DNA of 64,000 nucleotides from positions 9,982,001-10,046,000 of the forward strand of contig NC_083422.1 in the NCBI RefSeq assembly GCF_020745735.1. The letters run 5' to 3'. The translations under genes and the position numbers were made by a program. Shown here in pieces: positions 30,796 to 52,164 of the stretch; the first letter of the stretch is position 1, and the number at the start of each line of letters is the position of its first letter. Source of the stretch: Hemiscyllium ocellatum. Taxonomy: Eukaryota. The notes under the pieces were generated by a model that worked only from the letters and a program-made list of their open reading frames with translations, ran no database searches and was not told where the DNA came from.

Positions 30796-30937
30796 NNNNN
30801 NNNNNNNNNNNNNNNNNNNNNNNNNNNNNNNNNNNNNNNNNNNNNNNNNNNNNNNNNNNNNNNNNNNNNNNNNNNNNNNNNNNNNNNNNNNNNNNNNNNN
30901 NNNNNNNNNNNNNNNNNNNNNNNNNNNNNNNNNNNNN
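30796..30937. other. Assembly gap (N run)
   Basis: Run of n characters. Confidence 1.
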
Positions 30938-35422: not shown

Positions 35423-35845
35423 GCAGTAACCTGGACCAATCCAAGGAGGGCAATAATTATAAATAGTTTCCAATTGCACACTGATTTCAGAGATGATGTG
35501 GAGGTGTCAGGATTGGACTGGAGTTGTCAAAGTCAGAAGTCACATAGCACCAGGTTATAGTCCAACAGGTTTATTTGAAATCACAAGCTTTCAAAGCGCT
35601 GCACCTTCATCACAAGAAGTGATTTCACCGGATGAAGGAGCAGCGCTCCAAAAGCCTGTGATTTCAAATAGACCTGTTGGACTATAACCTGGTGCTGTGT
35701 GACTTCTGACTCTGTCCACTCCAGTCCAATCCTGGCACCTCCACATCATCTCTGTAATCAGTGTGCCATTGGAAACTATTTATAACTATTGCCCTCCTTG
35801 GACCGTTCCAATTTACTGCAATATAACCTGTTGTGTGACTTCTGA
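35423..35845. mobile_element. PLE family C palindromic element (arms about 190 bp) with decayed hammerheads
   Basis: 35423-35611 is the reverse complement of 35631-35819; core tcac-cggatga-a-ggagc-agc-gctcc-aaaagcct-gtga. Confidence 0.8.
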
Positions 35846-36190: not shown

Positions 36191-36432
36191 AAAGATGCCA
36201 TCTGACAATGGAGTGACAATGATTGTTCAGCTACAATGTGGATCAGACACTTCCCACAGCATTTCCAAACAATAAATATTGATCTATATCATTTATAAAT
36301 TTAAATATTACATTATTTATTGCACTATGACACATCACACAGTGGTCTCAAATCTACCATCAGCCGTGTTATACGGTACACGGACCTCAGAGCGAAGAGC
36401 AGGATTGATGGACCACAGTCTCTACTCCACAT

Positions 36433-36710
36433 ACGGCACAGTGGCTCAGTGATTAGCACTGCTGCCTCACAGCGCCAGGGACCCAGGTTTGAATCCACGC
36501 TCGGGTGACTACCTGTGTGGTGTTTACACATTCTCCCTGTGCCTGCATGGTTTCCTCCAGTTTTGTCCCACAGTCCAAAGATGTGTAGGTTAGGTGGTTT
36601 AGTCATGGGAAATGCAGGGTTACAGGATGTGGTAGAGGCTTGGGTCTGGGTGAGATGCTCTTTGGAGTCTCTGCACCGAATGGCCTGCTTCCACACTGCA
36701 GGGATTCTGT
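36433..36710 (+). mobile_element. HE1-type V-SINE (diverged)
   Basis: Head ggcacagtggctcagtgattagcactgctgcc; tail ctgcagggattctg. Confidence 0.85.
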
Positions 36711-37014
36711 CAAAACACCTCTTTATTATGCAATGACAAGTTCAGTGCTTTCTCATCCAAGATCTCTGTACTGTAATGCATTTTGTAAACTGGTACAAGA
36801 ATAACTTATTTTTTACTTGAAATCACCCACAGACTGCTTCTAACCTGTGGTCATTATCCCTTCCAGGAGATTACTGTGCTCAGTGTATGTGGAAATAAAG
36901 TTATAATTGGGAATTTAAGTCAACCAAACACCCAGGAAATTAAAGTCTGGTTGAAGATTTGTAGCTCGGGTGTCCGTTGTTGTGGTTCTGTTCGCCGAGC
37001 TGGAAGTTTTTGCT

Positions 37015-37054
37015 GCAAACGTTTCGTTCCCTGGCTAGGGAACATCATCAGTGC
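37015..37054 (-). ncRNA. Minimal type I hammerhead ribozyme motif in the pLTR
   Basis: GCA-CUGAUGA-U-GUUCCCU-AGCC-AGGGAAC-GAAAC-GUU-UGC. Confidence 0.8.
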
Positions 37055-38037
37055 TATTGGAGCCTCCTGTGAAGCGCTGCTTTGATGTTTCTTCCGGTAT
37101 TTATAGTGGTTTGTTCTTGCCGCTTCCGGGTGTCAGTTTCAGCTGTAGTAGTTTGTATGTGGGGTCCAGGTCGATGTGTCTGTTGATGAATGTTCTTGCC
37201 GCTTCCGGGTGTCAGTTTCAGCTGTAGTGGTTTGTATATGGGGTCCAGGTCTATGTGTCTGTTAATGGAGTTTGTGGATGAATGCCATGCCTCTAGGAAT
37301 TCCCTGGCTGTTCTCTGTCTGGCTTGTCCTATGATGGTAGTGTTTTCCCAGTCAAATTCATGTTCCTGGTTGTCTGAGTGTATGGCTACTAGGGATAGCT
37401 GGTCGTGTCGTTTTGTGGCTAGCTGATGTTCATGGATGCGGATTGTTAGCTGTCTTCCTGTTTGTCCTATATAGTGTTTTGTGCAATCCTTGCATGGTAT
37501 TTTGTAAACTACGTTAGTTTGGCTCGTGCTGGCTATTGGGTCCTTTATTCCAGTGAGTTGTTGTCTGAGTGTGGAAGTTGGCTTGTGTGCTGTTATGAGT
37601 CCTAAGGGTCGCAGTAGTCTGGCTGTCAGTTCTGAGACGCTCCTGACGTATGGTAGTGTGGCTAGTCCTTTTGGTTGTGGCATGTCCTCGTTCCGTGGTC
37701 TATCTCTTAGGCATCTGGTGATGAAGTTGCGTGGGTATCCGTTTTTGGCGAATACCTTGTATAGGTGTTCCTCTTCCTCTTTTCGCAGTTCTGGTGTACT
37801 GCAGTGTGTTGTGGCTCTTTTGAATAGTGTCCTGATGCAGCTTCGTTTGTGTGTGTTGGGGTGGTTACTTTCATAGTTTAGGACTTGGTCTGTGTGTGTT
37901 GGTTTCCTGTGTACCCTTGTGGTGAATTCTCCGTTGGGTGTTCTCTCTACTAACACGTCTAGGAATGGGAGTTGGCTATCCTTTTCCTCTTCTCTCGTGA
38001 ATCGTATTCCTGTGAGTGTGGCGTTGATGATGAACAC
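37054..38037 (-). CDS. Truncated PLE polyprotein: RT thumb/C-terminus plus GIY-YIG endonuclease (open frame; the start is a junction artefact)
   Basis: IRFTREEE..LPFLDV..VHRKPTHTDQVLNYESNHP; NGYP; NVVYKIPCKDCTKHYIGQTGRQLTIRIHEH (GIY-YIG); REFLEAWH..NSINR. Confidence 0.85.
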   Translation of the reverse strand: MFIINATLTGIRFTREEEKDSQLPFLDVLVERTPNGEFTTRVHRKPTHTDQVLNYESNHPNTHKRSCIRTLFKRATTHCSTPELRKEEEEHLYKVFAKNGYPRNFITRCLRDRPRNEDMPQPKGLATLPYVRSVSELTARLLRPLGLITAHKPTSTLRQQLTGIKDPIASTSQTNVVYKIPCKDCTKHYIGQTGRQLTIRIHEHQLATKRHDQLSLVAIHSDNQEHEFDWENTTIIGQARQRTAREFLEAWHSSTNSINRHIDLDPIYKPLQLKLTPGSGKNIHQQTHRPGPHIQTTTAETDTRKRQEQTTINTGRNIKAALHRRLQ

Positions 38038-39020
38038 ACCGAATCATCAACGCCACACTCACAGGAATACGATTCACGAGAGAAGAGGAAAAGGATAGCC
38101 AACTCCCATTCCTAGACGTGTTAGTAGAGAGAACACCCAACAGAGAATTCACCACAAGGGTACACAGGAAACCAACACACACAGACCAAGTCCTAAACTA
38201 TGAAAGTAACCACCCCAACACACACAAACGAAGCTGCATCAGGACACTATTCAAAAGAGCCACAACACACTGCAGTACACCAGAACTGCGAAAAGAGGAA
38301 GAGGAACACCTATACAAGGTATTCGCCAAAAACGGATATCCACGCAACTTCATCACCAGATGCCTAAGAGATAGACCACGGAACGAGGACATGCCACAAC
38401 CAAAAGGACTAGCCACACTACCATACGTCAGGAGCGTCTCAGAACTGACAGCCTGACTACTGCGACCCTTAGGACTCATAACAGCACACAAGTCAACTTC
38501 CACACTCAGACAACAACTCACTAGAATAAAGGACCCAATAGCCAGCACGAGCCAAACTAACGTAGTTTACAAAATACCATGCAAGGACTGCACAAAACAC
38601 TATATAGGACAAACAGGAAGACAGCTAACAATCCGCATCCATGAACATCAGCTAGCCACAAAACGACACGACCAGCTATCCCTAGTAGCCATACACTCAG
38701 ACAACCAGGAACATGAATTTGACTGGGAAAACACTACCATCATAGGACAAGCCAGACAGAGAACAGCCAGGGAATTCCTAGAGGCATGGCATTCATCCAC
38801 AAACTCCATTAACAGACACATAGACCTGGACCCCATATACAAACCACTACAGCTGAAACTGACACCCGGAAGCGGCAAGAACATTCATCAACAGACACAT
38901 CGACCTGGACCCCACATACAAACTACTACAGCTGAAACTGACACCTGGAAGCGGCAAGAACAAACCACTATAAATACCAGAAGAAACATCAAAGCAGCGC
39001 TTCACAGGAGGCTCCAATAG
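38034..39020 (+). pseudogene. Mirror copy of the PLE RT-thumb/GIY-YIG frame with a premature stop
   Basis: Same peptide as the left arm; AGA>TGA at 38454. Confidence 0.9.
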
Positions 39021-39059
39021 CACTGATGATGTTCCCTAGCCAGGGAACGAAACGTTTGC
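39020..39059 (+). ncRNA. Minimal type I hammerhead ribozyme motif in the pLTR
   Basis: Stem I gca/tgc, core CTGATGA at 39023-39029, 7-bp stem II, GAAAC-GTT with palindromic AAACGTTT. Confidence 0.8.
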
Positions 39060-39429
39060 AGCAAAAACTTCCAGCTCGGCGAACAGAACCACAACCCAGG
39101 AAATTAGCAAGTGGTTCAGAGTCCAAGCTAACAAACATAATGTAGGTGATTTCGCAACCAATGGATCAGGGAAAGAGAGATTATATCATCACATGGTAGG
39201 CAATAAACACTGGGGAGGAGCTAAAACTTTGGAAACAAGCTAATATGGTGATGTTTCCAAAATGATGGCCAGCACTGTCTGGGAAATTGTGGATCCGATA
39301 GATTTACAACAATATATTGCAAAAAAAATGGATTTCCATTTCCAAAAAAAATGGATTTCACACACGGAATACTTACATAGAAAAGGACCAAAGTGCATTC
39401 ATAAAATCTTTTTCTACCCTGGCAGTCAC

Positions 39430-40040
39430 GTCACAGAGTCATAGAGATGTACAGCACGGAAACAGACCCTTCGGTCCAAACCGTCCAGATATCCCAACTC
39501 AATCTAGTCCCACCTGGCAGCACCCAGCCCATATCCCTCCAAACCCTTCCTAGTCATATATCCATCCAAATACCTCTTAAATGTTGCAATTGTACCAGCC
39601 TCCACCACTCCCTCTGGCAGCTCATTCCATACACGTACCACCCTCTGTGTGAAAAAAGTTGCCCCATACGTCTCTTTAATATCTTTCCCCTCTCACCCTA
39701 AACCTATGCCCTCTCGTTCTGGACTTCCCAACCCAGGGAAAAGACTTTGTCTATTTATCCTATCCATGCCCCTCATAATTTTGTAAACATCTATAAGGTC
39801 ACCCCTCAGCCTCTGACGCTCCAGGGAAAACAGCCCCAGCCTGTTCAGCCACTCCCTGTAACTCAAATCCTCCAACCCTGGCAACATCCTTGTAAATCTT
39901 TTCTGAAGCCTTTCAAGTTTCACAACATATTTCCGATAGGAAGGAGATTAGAATTGCATGCAATATTCCAATAGTGGCCTAACCAATGTCCTGTACAGCT
40001 GCAACATGACCTCCCAACTCCTGTACTCAATACTCTGACC
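39430..40040 (-). mobile_element. CR1/HER1-like LINE 3' fragment
   Basis: KLERLQKRFTRMLPGLEDLSYREWLNRLGLFSLERQRLRGDL on the minus strand. Confidence 0.92.
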
Positions 40041-40672
40041 AACAAATGAAAGCATATCAACTTGATGGAATATAAATGGAATTCTCAAGGAATCTGACAT
40101 AGTCCTCCTAGAATAGCTGTAATTTATGCTTAAAGCATTGAATAAAGCCTGATGATATATATAATATCTAAATCTTATATGAAAGGTTGACTAAAGGATT
40201 GAAGGCAGCCCATTGTAATGAAAAGGAGTTATATTGAGCTGTGGAAAGGGATAGCCCTAATATCATTGTTGAGACTGTGCCTGAATTGAACTTAATTTAA
40301 CATTATGATTTCAGAAGCTCAACATAAACTGGTCACATAGACACGAGGAGATGAGCTACTACAAGATGGGTGGCAAACAGGGAGAGGTTTAGTTCTTTTT
40401 TGAAGAAAACTATCAGAAATAATGAGTGCTTTCCCTGTGAAGGAGATGAAAGACAGAAATAGATAACAACTAATATACTTCCCCTTCATGGATAGAAGGG
40501 AACTGAATTAGAGGTGAAGTAGACAGCCTGACATAAATAACCTTTTCCCCATGATTATTTAGAAATATAGAAAATAGAAGCAGGAGTAGGCCATTTGGCC
40601 CCTTGAGCTTGCTCCAACATTTAAAACAATCGTGGCTGATCATCCAAATCAACAGCCTGTTCCCCTCCATAT

Positions 40673-41185
40673 CCTCTAGGAATTCTTTGGCTGTTCTCTG
40701 TCTGGCTTGTCCTATAATAGTAGTGTTGTCCCAGTCGAATTCATGTTGCTTGTCATCTGCGTGTGTGGCTACTAAGGATAGCTGGTCATGTCGTTTCGTG
40801 GCTAGTTGGTGTTCATGGATGCGGATTGTTAGCTGTCTTCCTGTTTGTCCTGTGTAGTGTTTTGTGCAGTCCTTGCATGGGATTTTGTACACTAGGGAAT
40901 TCCTAAAGGCATGGCACTCATCACTGATTCAATCAATAAGCACATTGACCTGGACCCAATATACCGGCCACTGCAGCGGACAGCTGGGACTGACAACCGG
41001 AAGCGGCAGGTACAAATCACTATAAATGCCGGAGGAAACAACACAGAGGCGCTTCACAGGAGGCTCCCAAGCAATGAAGATGTCACCTAGACAGGGGACG
41101 AAACATCTGTAACACAAATTCCCAGCTCGGTGAACAGAACCACAACAACGAGCACCCGAGCTACAAATCTTCTCCCAAACTTTGA
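40673..41185. mobile_element. Second Poseidon-type PLE fragment with 5' inversion
   Basis: Minus 40673-40894 encodes VYKIPCKDCTKHYTGQTGRQ..KEFLE; plus 40895-41185 continues from EFLKAWH to the pLTR, with a decayed hammerhead at 41071-41110. Confidence 0.9.
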
Positions 41186-42955: not shown

Positions 42956-44273
42956 TCCACACCTCTTCCTTTGTGTCCCCTCAGACACTCACTCTCAAAA
43001 GACTCGATCAAACTCTTCAAATCATCTTAGTCCTCAGTTTTGTTTGAATAGAATGGCAGGAGAAGGTGCTCTGATCTCCGTATGTCCTATTTCTCATGTT
43101 CTTGAGAATGCCACTCTGTCCAAATTTGTTATCCGCCATCTTGGGCGATGAGAGAAACTGCAACAGCATTAAAGACACCACTGAGGAGGCAGCTCACTCT
43201 AATCAGTGTCTCTCTGTCGAATCTGGGTTCACAAACACAAATTCTGTGGTTCTGGCTAATGAGGAGCTGTAACAGACTCTGGAATCTCCATTCTGTGGGC
43301 AAATGGGGGTGGGGTGGGGTGGGGAAGCAACCTGTCAGAGTCAGACCCAACTTAGTCTTCACTGTAAATGAAGAGAGAGTGGTTCAAAGTTCATCGGAGC
43401 ATGAAATTGTCTTGGAAAGCAGTGTTCACCTTTATCAACTCAGTAGGTTGTTGGATGGGACAGTGTCAGTTCACGTTGGGGGAAAAAGCATGAACAATTT
43501 TTTTTAAAAAGGCAGCATGATTGTGAAGCAGTGTTGTCCCATCATAGTCTCTGCTTTGAATAGTTATCACGGGAAAATTCATAGTTCACTCAGGATCGCT
43601 GAGCAATCAGGCTAATTAAACTGCAAACAAGAACAAGTTACCATCAGGGGAGAAGTGGACACTTGACAATATGAACTCCCCAAAGTTCCCATCATTCCCT
43701 TCGTCACTGCTTCTTCTCCCAACAATTAGCCTTGTTGAGAATTTTCAAGAACTCGACTTTTTTAAAAATAATAAACAGAACATTTGGCGACTAAAGCTAA
43801 GAATTAGGGATATGACGCATCCATTGGAGTCTGGAATATCAGTAATGTGTGTTAATCGCCCAGTACTGGCATCATTCAATGTTGGTGTACACATCACAGC
43901 AATCAGCTGAAATGCGAGATTCAGTGTTTCCCAGTTCAGCAACGCTGCCTGCCACAAGTAACACTCTTTTTTCTGAAATACAGACCTCTCCATCACTGGT
44001 GACAATACATCCACCAAGTGCATCACTGATTGGGTGCCAAATCCAGGAACAGACCAAACATTTTATGTTGATATAGACCCATTTGCAGCTTCATAAAAGC
44101 CCCAGACGACTTGCATTTATTTAGCTCCTTTAACATACTAAAACACCGAAAGATGTATCACAGGGAAGCTACCCAACATTTAAAAGGCATCTAAGTGTGT
44201 ACATGAAAAGGAAGGATTCAGAGGGATATGGGCAAAATGCTGGTAAATGGGACTAGATTAATTTAAGATATCT

Positions 44274-45135
44274 AGATTAGAGTGGTGCTAAAAAAGCACA
44301 GTAGGTCAGGCAGCATCCAAGGAGCAGGAGAATCAATGTTTCAGGCAAAAATCCTTCATCAGGAATGAGGTGGAAATATAAATGGGAGGGAGGTGGGGCT
44401 GGGGAGAAGGTAGCCAAGAGTACAATAGGTGGATGGGAGTGGGGATGGAGGTGATAGGCCAGAGAGGAGGGTGGAATGGATATGTGGGAAGGGAGATTGG
44501 CAGGTAGGACAGGTCATGGGGATGGTGCTGAGCTTTTTTTTTTAGATTAGATTAGATTAGATTAGATTAGATTTACAGTGTGGAAACAGGCCCTTCGGCC
44601 CAACAAGTCCACACCGACCCGCCGAAGCGCAACCCACCCATACCCCTACATTTACCCCTTACCTAACACTACGGGCAATTTAGCATGGCCAATTCACCTG
44701 ACCCGCACATCTTTGGACTGTGGGAGGAAACCGGAGCTCCCGGAGGAAACCCACGCAGACACGGGGAGAACGTGCAAACTCCACACAGTCAGTCGCCTGA
44801 GGCGGGAATTGAACCCAGGTCCCTGGCGCTGTGAGGCAGCAGTGCTAACCACTGTGCCACCGTGCTGCCCGTACTGCCCGTGCTGCCCGAGCTGGCAGGT
44901 TGGAACTGGGGTAAGGTAGGCGGAGAGGAAATGAGGAAACTGGTGAAGTCCACATTGATGCCCTGGGGTTGAAATGTTCCGAGGCAGAAGATAAGGCGTT
45001 CTCATTCCTGATGATGGACTTTTGCCCGAAACATCAATTTTCCTGCTCCTCGGATGCTGCCTGACCTGCTGTGCTTTTCCAGCTCCACACTAATCTAGGC
45101 GCTGATCTCCAGCATCTGGAGTCCTCACTTTCGCC
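44274..45135 (-). mobile_element. PLE family A (Neptune-like) 3' fragment with inverted pLTRs
   Basis: TSD taattta[a/g]gatatct at 44259-44273 and 45136-45150; minus 44941-45001 encodes ERLIFCLGTFQPQGINVDFT (GIY-YIG C-terminal PxGxN motif); decayed hammerheads in both arms. Confidence 0.88.
44534..44890 (-). mobile_element. HE1-type V-SINE (very young) nested in the PLE
   Basis: Consensus-like; long (TAATC)n plus A tail; short TSD gagct. Confidence 0.95.
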
Positions 45136-45245: not shown

Positions 45246-45463
45246 GAGAGTGCGGTGCTGGAAAAGCACAGCAGGTCAGGCAGTATCCGAGGAGCAGGAG
45301 AATTGATGTTTCGGGCATTAGTCCTTCATCATTCATTCCTGATGAAGGACTTATGCCCGAAATGTTGGTTCTCCTGCTCCTCAGATGCTGCCTGGCCTGC
45401 TGTGCTTTTCCAGCACCACACACTCAACTCTGATCTCTAGCATCTGCAGTCTTCACTTTCACC
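45246..45463. mobile_element. PLE family A palindromic mini-element
   Basis: Arms meet at ccttcatc-attcattcct-gatgaagg; tail ..gcatctgcagtcttcactttc. Confidence 0.85.
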
Positions 45464-51812: not shown

Positions 51813-52164
51813 AAAAGCTCAACTGAATAAACACTTCAGCAGATATCTCGCCAGGGAGCTTACCCAGTCACTTAGCTGGAGTCACATGATTTCTTGGAGT
51901 TCCTGCTTTGCCAAAAGGAATTGAGGTTCTAACTCATCAGATAGAAAACACCCCCACAGAACTTAAAAAGAAGCCATTTATCTCTACGTTAGAGCCCATG
52001 TCCCAAATTAGAACATATCATAAACCTTTACCATAGCATGGAAAACATGGCAGGAAATGAGGAGGCAATGGCCTAGTGGTATTATCGCCAGACTGTTAAT
52101 CCAGAGTTGAAAATGCGTTGCTGGTTAAAGCACAGCAGGTCAGGCAGCATCCAAGGAATAGGAA

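Follow-up and report, generated by a model that had tools for sequence, protein, structure and literature searches.

Two head-to-head copies of a 5′-truncated Penelope-like element inserted within a single target site duplication in Hemiscyllium ocellatum

An inverted, 5′-truncated copy together with a one-sided tail is reportedly what Evgen'ev and Arkhipova in 2005, and Arkhipova in 2006, described for canonical insertions of endonuclease-positive (EN+) Penelope-like elements (PLEs). Here, we analyzed a 64,000-nt stretch of Hemiscyllium ocellatum DNA (NC_083422.1:9,982,001–10,046,000, forward strand, assembly GCF_020745735.1; the whole stretch is called the window, and all positions follow its numbering), in which a palindrome of about 2.15 kb consists of two such truncated copies, arranged head to head within one target site duplication (TSD) and jointly absent from the orthologous site of a related species. 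The hallmarks of EN+ PLEs include frequent 5′ truncation, an inverted 5′-truncated copy, a tail of 30 to 40 bp at one end, a hammerhead motif, and a short TSD around the whole unit (PMC8557442, PMC3846280, PMC4209133). The shark locus has the same truncation, inverted layout, and single short TSD, and its 36-nt tail matches the one-sided PLE tail of 30 to 40 bp (PMC8557442, PMC11167929). A hammerhead-like motif in the terminal repeat, the encoding of the first residues of the open reading frame (ORF) by repeat and tail, and an AT-containing target are likewise common to both. However, at the shark locus, neither a full-length copy nor a direct pseudo-long terminal repeat (pLTR) lies between the inverted parts, and the truncation points of the two partners nearly coincide, so that a near-perfect palindrome takes the place of short inverted pLTRs on either side of an ORF. 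The head-to-head layout is thus already documented for PLEs, and this locus is a long, clean example of it. An earlier, sequence-only reading of this DNA had overrated its novelty, since inverted 5′-truncated copies and a one-sided tail of 30 to 40 bp belong to the textbook picture of PLEs (PMC8557442, PMC3846280), and the layout recurs within the window.

The closest biochemical counterpart is PAc, a Poseidon element of Anolis carolinensis (Frangieh et al. 2024, PMC11167929). The PAc protein cleaves and extends both target strands in vitro, uses two adjacent internal start sites whose interval corresponds to the tail, and prefers ATT targets; its reverse transcription begins about 110 nt into the ORF, where the sequence is rich in AC, and its hammerhead overlaps the start of this ORF (PMC11167929). 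The shark element likewise has two ends in AC-rich sequence, 70 and 106 nt past an ATG, one for each strand, a hammerhead-like motif overlapping the start of the ORF, and an ATT-type target. In contrast to the lizard system, which is in vitro biochemistry in which the joining of cDNAs has not been reconstituted, the shark locus offers a genomic scar alone, and its resemblance to PAc and Poseidon, with the ATG inside the hammerhead ribozyme (HHR) motif and ends 70 and 106 nt into the ORF, is one of organization only.

In L1 twin priming, as reportedly set out by Ostertag and Kazazian in 2001, the 3′ ends of both target strands prime cDNA in one event and an inversion arises within one TSD. The inferred both-strand priming in a single event and the inverted structure inside one TSD are common to L1 and the shark locus; however, the second L1 primer anneals internally, so that each of the two cDNAs represents another part of the RNA and the outcome is an inversion and not a duplication. 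Both shark arms copy the same 1053 nt from the region of the 3′ end, and arms that copy different, adjacent parts of the RNA were found only in an older neighboring copy (40673–40894 on the minus strand and 40894–41176 on the plus strand). With regard to dating, the palindrome can be compared with the paired long terminal repeats (LTRs) of retroelements, which are identical at insertion and diverge neutrally afterwards, so that K/2µ dates the event. In both cases two initially identical sequences diverge neutrally, but identity of the palindrome arms at time zero requires the same or identical RNA and two independent passes of reverse transcriptase (RT), and the arms are prone to gene conversion.

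The inverted-repeat search reproduced the two arms that the sequence-only reading had described, a left arm at 36979–38031 (minus strand) and a right arm at 38043–39095 (plus strand), each of 1053 nt, 99% complementary to each other, and separated by 11 nt. As revealed by base-by-base comparison, the arms are 99.2% identical and differ at exactly 8 sites, with right-arm positions 38142, 38339, 38454, 38493, 38523, 38588, 38946, and 38979; the earlier reading had listed all 8 of these positions, although it gave the number as a lower bound. Seven of the 8 differences are transitions and one (38454) is a transversion, and 3 lie in a CpG context, with the TG or CA form in the right arm in all 3 cases. 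The right copy contains an in-frame TGA stop at 38454–38456 (plus strand), where the left copy has AGA and homologous proteins have an arginine, in agreement with the earlier claim of mostly transitions and a stop in the right arm. The left copy has an open reading frame of 328 codons (38040 to 37057, minus strand), intact from the edge of the arm at 38031 to 37057.

The palindrome is bracketed by an exact 13-bp repeat, ACCCAGGAAATTA, at 36930–36942 and 39094–39106; the first 2 letters (AC) of the right TSD copy could equally be assigned to the last 2 letters of the right arm. Between the left TSD copy and the left arm lies a tail of 36 nt (36943–36978, minus strand), a 3′ extension of the left copy that has no counterpart at the right end, where the right copy stops at a proximal 3′ end. 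Thus, the one 13-bp TSD and the left-only tail noted from the sequence are both present, and an inverted repeat of 1 kb at 99.2% identity, flanked by an exact 13-bp repeat, cannot be of chance origin. The 11 nt in the center (38032–38042, plus strand), GAACACACCGA, read T-H-R in the frame of the right arm and GVF in that of the left. Shark homologues have TH[W/Q]IINAT at this position in the alignment, while the GVF reading matches nothing; judged from this alignment, the central letters do belong to the right copy as its 5′-most part, unpaired in the left copy, as their continuation of the right arm's frame had suggested earlier.

The orthologous site provided independent evidence that the structure is a single insertion. 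Of the sequencing runs listed, eight contained half or more of the words of the stretch, and all came from organism A (three samples, two studies); organisms B and C contained about one-quarter. Contigs were compared at 88% likeness for two runs of organism A (X1 and X5), one of organism B (X10), and one of organism C (X12). An empty site with a single TSD copy in a related species, the check proposed with the sequence-only reading, was found in record 10 of X10, a 631-nt contig of organism B: its letters 31–281 lie on 36678–36929 and its letters 282–628 directly on 39094–39456. This contig lacks exactly 2164 nt, corresponding to the 2151-nt insertion plus one 13-nt TSD copy, and retains the other TSD copy. 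In organism A, X1 record 2 covers 36682–36964, running from the flank through the TSD into 22 nt of the tail; X1 record 5 covers 39070–39459, running from 24 nt of the arm through the TSD into the flank; and X5 record 26 contains the right junction at 39070–39458. All three align with 0 differences and support both junctions, although they are not formal bridges. That they end early in the element is due to the extreme abundance of the PLE family (summed depth of 10^5 to 10^6). Their depths, 24 to 41 versus 26 to 36 for the unique flanks, give no hint of heterozygosity. The organism C run had no depth over the unique flanks and was therefore uninformative on presence or absence. With the single TSD and the exact empty site in organism B, the earlier claim that the head-to-head pair arose in one insertion held up, and one true insertion event took place at this locus.

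The divergence between the arms is small relative to that between the two organisms. The 8 differences over 1053 nt correspond to a K of 0.0076 (0.76%), whereas 29 of 615 aligned sites differ between the unique flanks of organisms A and B (K = 0.049, 4.9%), giving a ratio of 0.16. Under a clock, the insertion would have occurred at about one-sixth of the time since the A–B split, or, very roughly, some 4 to 8 million years ago if a slow vertebrate rate of 0.5 to 1 × 10^−9 per site per year is assumed. This age is a minimum because gene conversion from arm to arm is possible. Six of the 8 differences are nonsynonymous, one of them being the stop, and 2 are synonymous; polarization against shark homologues placed 5 of 6 changes in the right arm and 1 of 6 in the left as derived, which is not significantly uneven (p = 0.22). 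These differences look like neutral decay after insertion, and the observed/expected CpG ratio of the arms (0.51, compared with 0.28 for the window) fits a young insert. The insertion is young relative to the A–B split, and arm divergence, proposed as a clock in the sequence-only reading, is usable as such, with arm-to-arm gene conversion and the hypermutability of CpG sites as its caveats.

A word-indexed protein search yielded 191 matches for the ORF of the arms. The best were uncharacterized proteins, 79 to 86% identical, from Hemiscyllium ocellatum, Chiloscyllium punctatum, Stegostoma tigrinum, and Rhincodon typus; many of the top shark matches carry PF00078 (RVT_1; P0002 and P0008 among its carriers) together with PF26215, and flatworm Penelope-type proteins ranked below them at about 50% identity. 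Such matches point to an orectolobiform shark, a carpet or bamboo shark, as the most probable host. In alignment A1, the arms start directly after the ...YVDDTFVIIKNTEIEN stretch of longer shark proteins, just past the YVDD motif, and extend through a VVYKIPCKDCTKHYIGQTGR...EH block to the C terminus. The RT core is thus missing from the arms through 5′ truncation, and the relationship to PLE-type RTs was seen in the homology downstream of YVDD. The motif VVYKIPC..C..HYIGQTGR...R..EH is visible in the arm translation, and the homologues P0020, P0069, and P0087 carry precomputed PF01541 annotations; the C-terminal block is very probably a GIY-YIG domain. By this homology, the arms are the C-terminal region of the RT, the linker, and, very probably, the GIY-YIG endonuclease of a PLE, followed by a short 3′ region, and the shark matches and the alignment back the Penelope RT-thumb/GIY-YIG identification made from the letters. 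The pair is nonfunctional and 5′ truncated in both copies, and the literature searched yielded no name for this shark PLE family.

The repeat search also detected a 79-bp tandem duplication in the C-terminal coding region of both arms (37112–37267, minus strand, and 38807–38962, plus strand), which, being present in both, was already in the source element. Each duplication unit is 7 nt shorter than the corresponding segment of the older copy and of the shark homologues, for a net gain of 72 nt with the frame kept. Some other genomic copies are without it, as contig joints skip 80 to 87 nt. Two gene models, P0035 (a MAP3K7 isoform of C. punctatum) and P0038 (a ZSWIM7 isoform of S. tigrinum), contain stretches 60 to 85% identical to the PLE ORF, which are probably PLE fragments taken into gene models or exonized.

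Near its 3′ end, each copy has a minimal hammerhead-like motif (37021–37051, minus strand, and 39023–39053, plus strand), composed of CTGATGA, one unpaired T, a 7-bp helix II, GAAAC, and then the palindromic ACGT. The pattern search returned 10 matches against 0.43 expected, and the helix II hairpin was recovered in the minimum free energy (MFE) fold. In the minimal HHR of PLEs, helix II is long and bears an unpaired base at the 5′ end, a genuine helix III is missing, and the ribozyme is presumed to act as a dimer (PMC4209133); the shark motif matches this published architecture and is a putative ribozyme. The ATG inside CTGATGA opens the N-terminal frame of the element, MMFPSQGTKRLQQKLPARRTEPQQRTPELQIFNQT (MMFPSQGTK...ELQIFNQT), in which no stop occurs before the tail ends. 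The two 3′ ends lie in AC-rich sequence, the proximal one 70 nt past this ATG and the distal one, counting the tail, 106 nt past it. In rotifer PLEs, the pLTR and tail encode the first 12 to 22 residues of the ORF (PMC3846280). An older related copy continues past the same ...GAACAGAACCACAAC into a homologous tail at 41147–41176, so that the tail is element sequence and not filler.

From this structure, it appears likely that a 5′-truncated PLE inserted once, as two head-to-head copies within one 13-bp TSD, by reverse transcription primed on both target strands. The PLE endonuclease would nick the two strands 13 bp apart, and each 3′-OH would prime reverse transcription of element RNA. The top-strand 3′-OH following ...GGAAATTA (…AAATTA-3′) would prime at the distal start site, giving the left copy with its 36-nt tail, and the bottom-strand 3′-OH at the other edge of the 13-bp stagger would prime at the proximal site through a 2-nt AC overlap, giving the tail-less right copy. 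Synthesis of each cDNA would proceed over about 1.06 kb and stop at almost identical positions (q1 in the right copy, q12 in the left), which most simply mark where a truncated template RNA began. The 3′ ends of the two cDNAs would then be connected directly, with no filler; probably, an end-to-end template jump allowed one cDNA to act as second-strand template for the other. The 8 arm differences would have arisen later by neutral decay. The priming on both strands, the shared template boundary, and the end-to-end jump are what we infer, whereas the structure, the PLE identity, the single event, and the empty orthologous site are observed. Neither arm can simply have been copied from the other, because the tail is found only in the left and the central 11 nt only in the right; both are element derived, which calls for two separate RNA-templated cDNAs and excludes both simple orders of snap-back synthesis. 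If the right-arm cDNA had been made first, its copy would have passed beyond the proximal end into the primer and flank and not into a tail; if the left-arm cDNA had been first, the loop would form the antisense continuation of the left arm, whereas it is contiguous with the right. The sequence-only reading had proposed that both arms were copied from one RNA in one event. The single event stands on the TSD and the empty site; the structure requires two separate RNA-templated cDNAs, for which one shared template would be plausible. In the simplest reading, both of these would have reached the 5′ terminus of one truncated RNA or of two identical ones.

The window contains four further palindromes and one inversion-type PLE insertion, which allowed this layout to be compared across insertions. 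Three are mini-palindromes of a second hammerhead-bearing PLE family with the core CTGATGAAGGGCTTATGCCCGAAAC, each with a tail of about 35 nt on one arm and, in two of them, a clear TSD of 14 to 15 bp. The first (52102–52200 and 52217–52315) has arms of 99 nt at 97% identity, a spacer of 16 nt, the TSD CTGTTAATCCAGAG, and its tail on the right only; the second (59048–59135 and 59144–59231) has arms of 88 nt at 94%, a spacer of 8 nt, the TSD GTGGTGATTTAATTG, and its tail on the left only; and the third (45246–45331 and 45340–45425) has arms of 86 nt at 87%, a spacer of 8 nt, and its tail on the right. The fourth palindrome (35423–35611 and 35631–35819), of a third family, has arms of 189 nt at 90% and a spacer of 19 nt with a degenerate hammerhead-like center. 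Thus, the spacers of all five palindromes, the focal one included, measure 8 to 19 nt while the arms range from 86 to 1053 nt, a pattern that favors a shared template boundary over truncations that are random and independent; since the spacers stay in this range whatever the arm length, synchronous polymerization is not favored as the cause of arm symmetry. The center of the palindrome at 52.2 kb contains reiterated CTGATGAAT, which suggests RT slippage at the end of the template. The tail and the extra central nucleotides are on the same arm in two of four palindromes (52.1 and 45.2 kb) and on different arms in the other two (the focal locus and 59.0 kb). The idea that the arm without a tail would always own the extra central nucleotides was accordingly rejected, as two of the four fit it and two do not. 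An even assortment of this kind is what independent priming would predict, unlike strict self-priming, the number of cases being small.

Several points weigh against this account of the locus. The three arm translations gave no Pfam match at E ≤ 0.01, and at E ≤ 10 the GIY-YIG domain (PF01541) was the only hit, below threshold (E 0.06; 14.1 bits versus a cut-off of 22.6). Rfam, run in E-value mode over 35–41 kb, made no hammerhead call. The junction contigs of organism A reach only 22 to 24 nt into the element, short of the 31-letter bridging rule, and none of the contigs examined crosses the center of the palindrome, so that the arm length and the 11-nt center rest on the assembly. In addition, the two cDNAs end within 11 nt of each other, for which dual priming gives no reason unless a template boundary was shared. 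For the palindromic junctions of PLEs, Arkhipova et al. in 2013 favored self-priming (PMC3846280).

According to the self-priming hypothesis, a single cDNA or antisense transcript folds back at its 3′ end and is copied into the second arm. It would account naturally for the symmetry of the arms and the small central spacer, in the focal insertion as in the four others, and its prediction that one arm should bear both the tail and the extra central nucleotides holds for the mini-palindromes at 52.1 and 45.2 kb. At the focal locus, however, the arm contiguous with the loop is the right one, which has no tail, and the left arm, the would-be copy, has 36 nt that its template lacks. A fold-back copy would also be expected to continue into the primer and flanking DNA, and the mini-palindrome at 59.0 kb shows the same discordance of tail and center as the focal locus. 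On balance, we regard self-priming as an unlikely origin of this palindrome.

A separate proposal, compatible with any of the modes of formation, is that the locus now functions as a source of hairpin RNA, either of endogenous small interfering RNA (endo-siRNA) or PIWI-interacting RNA (piRNA) directed against the PLE family or as an ADAR substrate. A read-through transcript would give about 1 kb of near-perfect double-stranded RNA, and inverted PLE halves in rotifers show switches in small-RNA polarity (PMC3846280). The extrusion of a cruciform, which the sequence-only reading had considered alongside the double-stranded RNA, is likewise a potential property of the locus. On the other side, among the runs containing the locus none is on record as RNA; neither a promoter, a host transcription unit, nor any host gene context was identified, and Pfam gave no match for seven other ORFs of the window; and the differences between the arms follow a neutral pattern, at 6 nonsynonymous to 2 synonymous with one stop. 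The microRNA (miRNA) matches returned by Rfam were all below the gathering score (mir-1294, 64.6 versus 90; mir-2008, 52.2 versus 93; mir-308, 34.7 versus 60), and those to mir-1294 and mir-308 lie at the palindrome center on both strands; such miRNA-like matches are a generic effect of any perfect hairpin. Taken together, a functional role of this sort seems rather improbable.

Assemblies are known to have difficulty with tandem and inverted structures of PLEs (PMC8557442), and with a center that no contig spans, the second arm might in principle stem from a chimeric palindromic long read or a mis-join. Yet both outer junctions were recovered in short-read contigs of organism A from two studies, with the 3′ ends of the element facing outward and no differences; the unique flanks continue on both sides of a perfect TSD, and the site is exactly empty in organism B. 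The arm differences with their CpG and transition bias, as well as the asymmetries of the tail and the 11 nt, fit PLE biology. Two outward-facing PLE 3′ ends in one TSD, jointly absent in organism B, constitute evidence that does not depend on the assembly and make a fold-back artefact very unlikely. Although a PLE endonuclease can target PLE sequence (PMC11167929), an origin in two events, by insertion of a second PLE in opposite orientation alongside the first or by a later inverted duplication of a single copy at the DNA level, is highly improbable as well, since one TSD brackets the whole structure with no internal TSD, organism B is without both arms together, and the arms are symmetrical to within 11 nt, where a DNA-level duplication would have copied the tail or flank too.

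The remaining repeats of the window include relatives of different ages. The inversion-type insertion at 40666–41176 is an older relative of the focal family, 78 to 90% identical to the focal PLE, and is neither a palindrome nor provided with a spacer: a reverse-complemented part (q532..q753; 40673–40894, minus strand) is followed by a sense part (q738 to the end, plus tail; 40894–41176, plus strand), with an overlap of 16 nt. A search around this copy, at 40.7–41.2 kb, found no recognizable TSD. It looks like an inversion of the L1 twin priming type, which would again imply priming on both strands. The third-family palindrome at 35423–35819 lies 1.1 kb to the left of the focal insertion, with …CCTTCATCA / GGATGAAGGAGCAGCGCTCCAAAAGC… at its center, and was probably left by a PLE-like family that inserted head to head at an earlier time; the sole Rfam match there, to mir-5365, was sub-threshold. 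Single ends of the second family were seen at 44272–44369 (minus strand), 45001–45098 (plus strand), and 57522–57593 (minus strand). The ends at 44.3 and 45.0 kb face outward with 631 nt between them, and this pair may be an asymmetric head-to-head insertion.

The flanks of the focal locus at 36323–36745 and 39425–40100 are very high-copy repeats, with summed contig depths of 10^6 to 10^7 in organisms A and B, and the left one starts like a tRNA-derived short interspersed nuclear element (GGCACAGTGGCTCAGTG…). Many contigs join 36708 directly to 39430–39437, a hint that the flanking repeat parts adjoin elsewhere in the genome, and an older repeat may enclose the unique DNA around the PLE. At 30796–30937, 142 consecutive N mark a gap or masked sequence.

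At the level of the genome, the importance of this locus is small, as it is one more dead PLE fragment, among the many that crowd this shark genome, and its layout is the known integration scar of its class. Its value is that of an unusually clean specimen, in which the arms are long, the TSD is perfect, a relative has the empty site, and two asymmetries are informative. Its presence or absence can serve as a dated marker to distinguish two related shark species, and it exemplifies a palindrome with 1-kb arms and an 11-nt spacer that has persisted long enough to accumulate 8 substitutions. For the PLEs themselves, a tail on one arm and 11 extra nucleotides on the other speak for priming on both strands rather than for simple self-priming, consistent with the biochemistry of the Anolis element. 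We tentatively raise the possibility that, in vivo, a PLE ribonucleoprotein may carry out target-primed reverse transcription on both strands in a single event, with two enzymes reading up to the same 5′ boundary of one RNA or of two identical RNAs and the resulting cDNAs fused by an end-to-end jump. If true, such both-strand priming in vivo would settle how the inverted repeats of PLEs arise, in favor of dual priming over self-priming.

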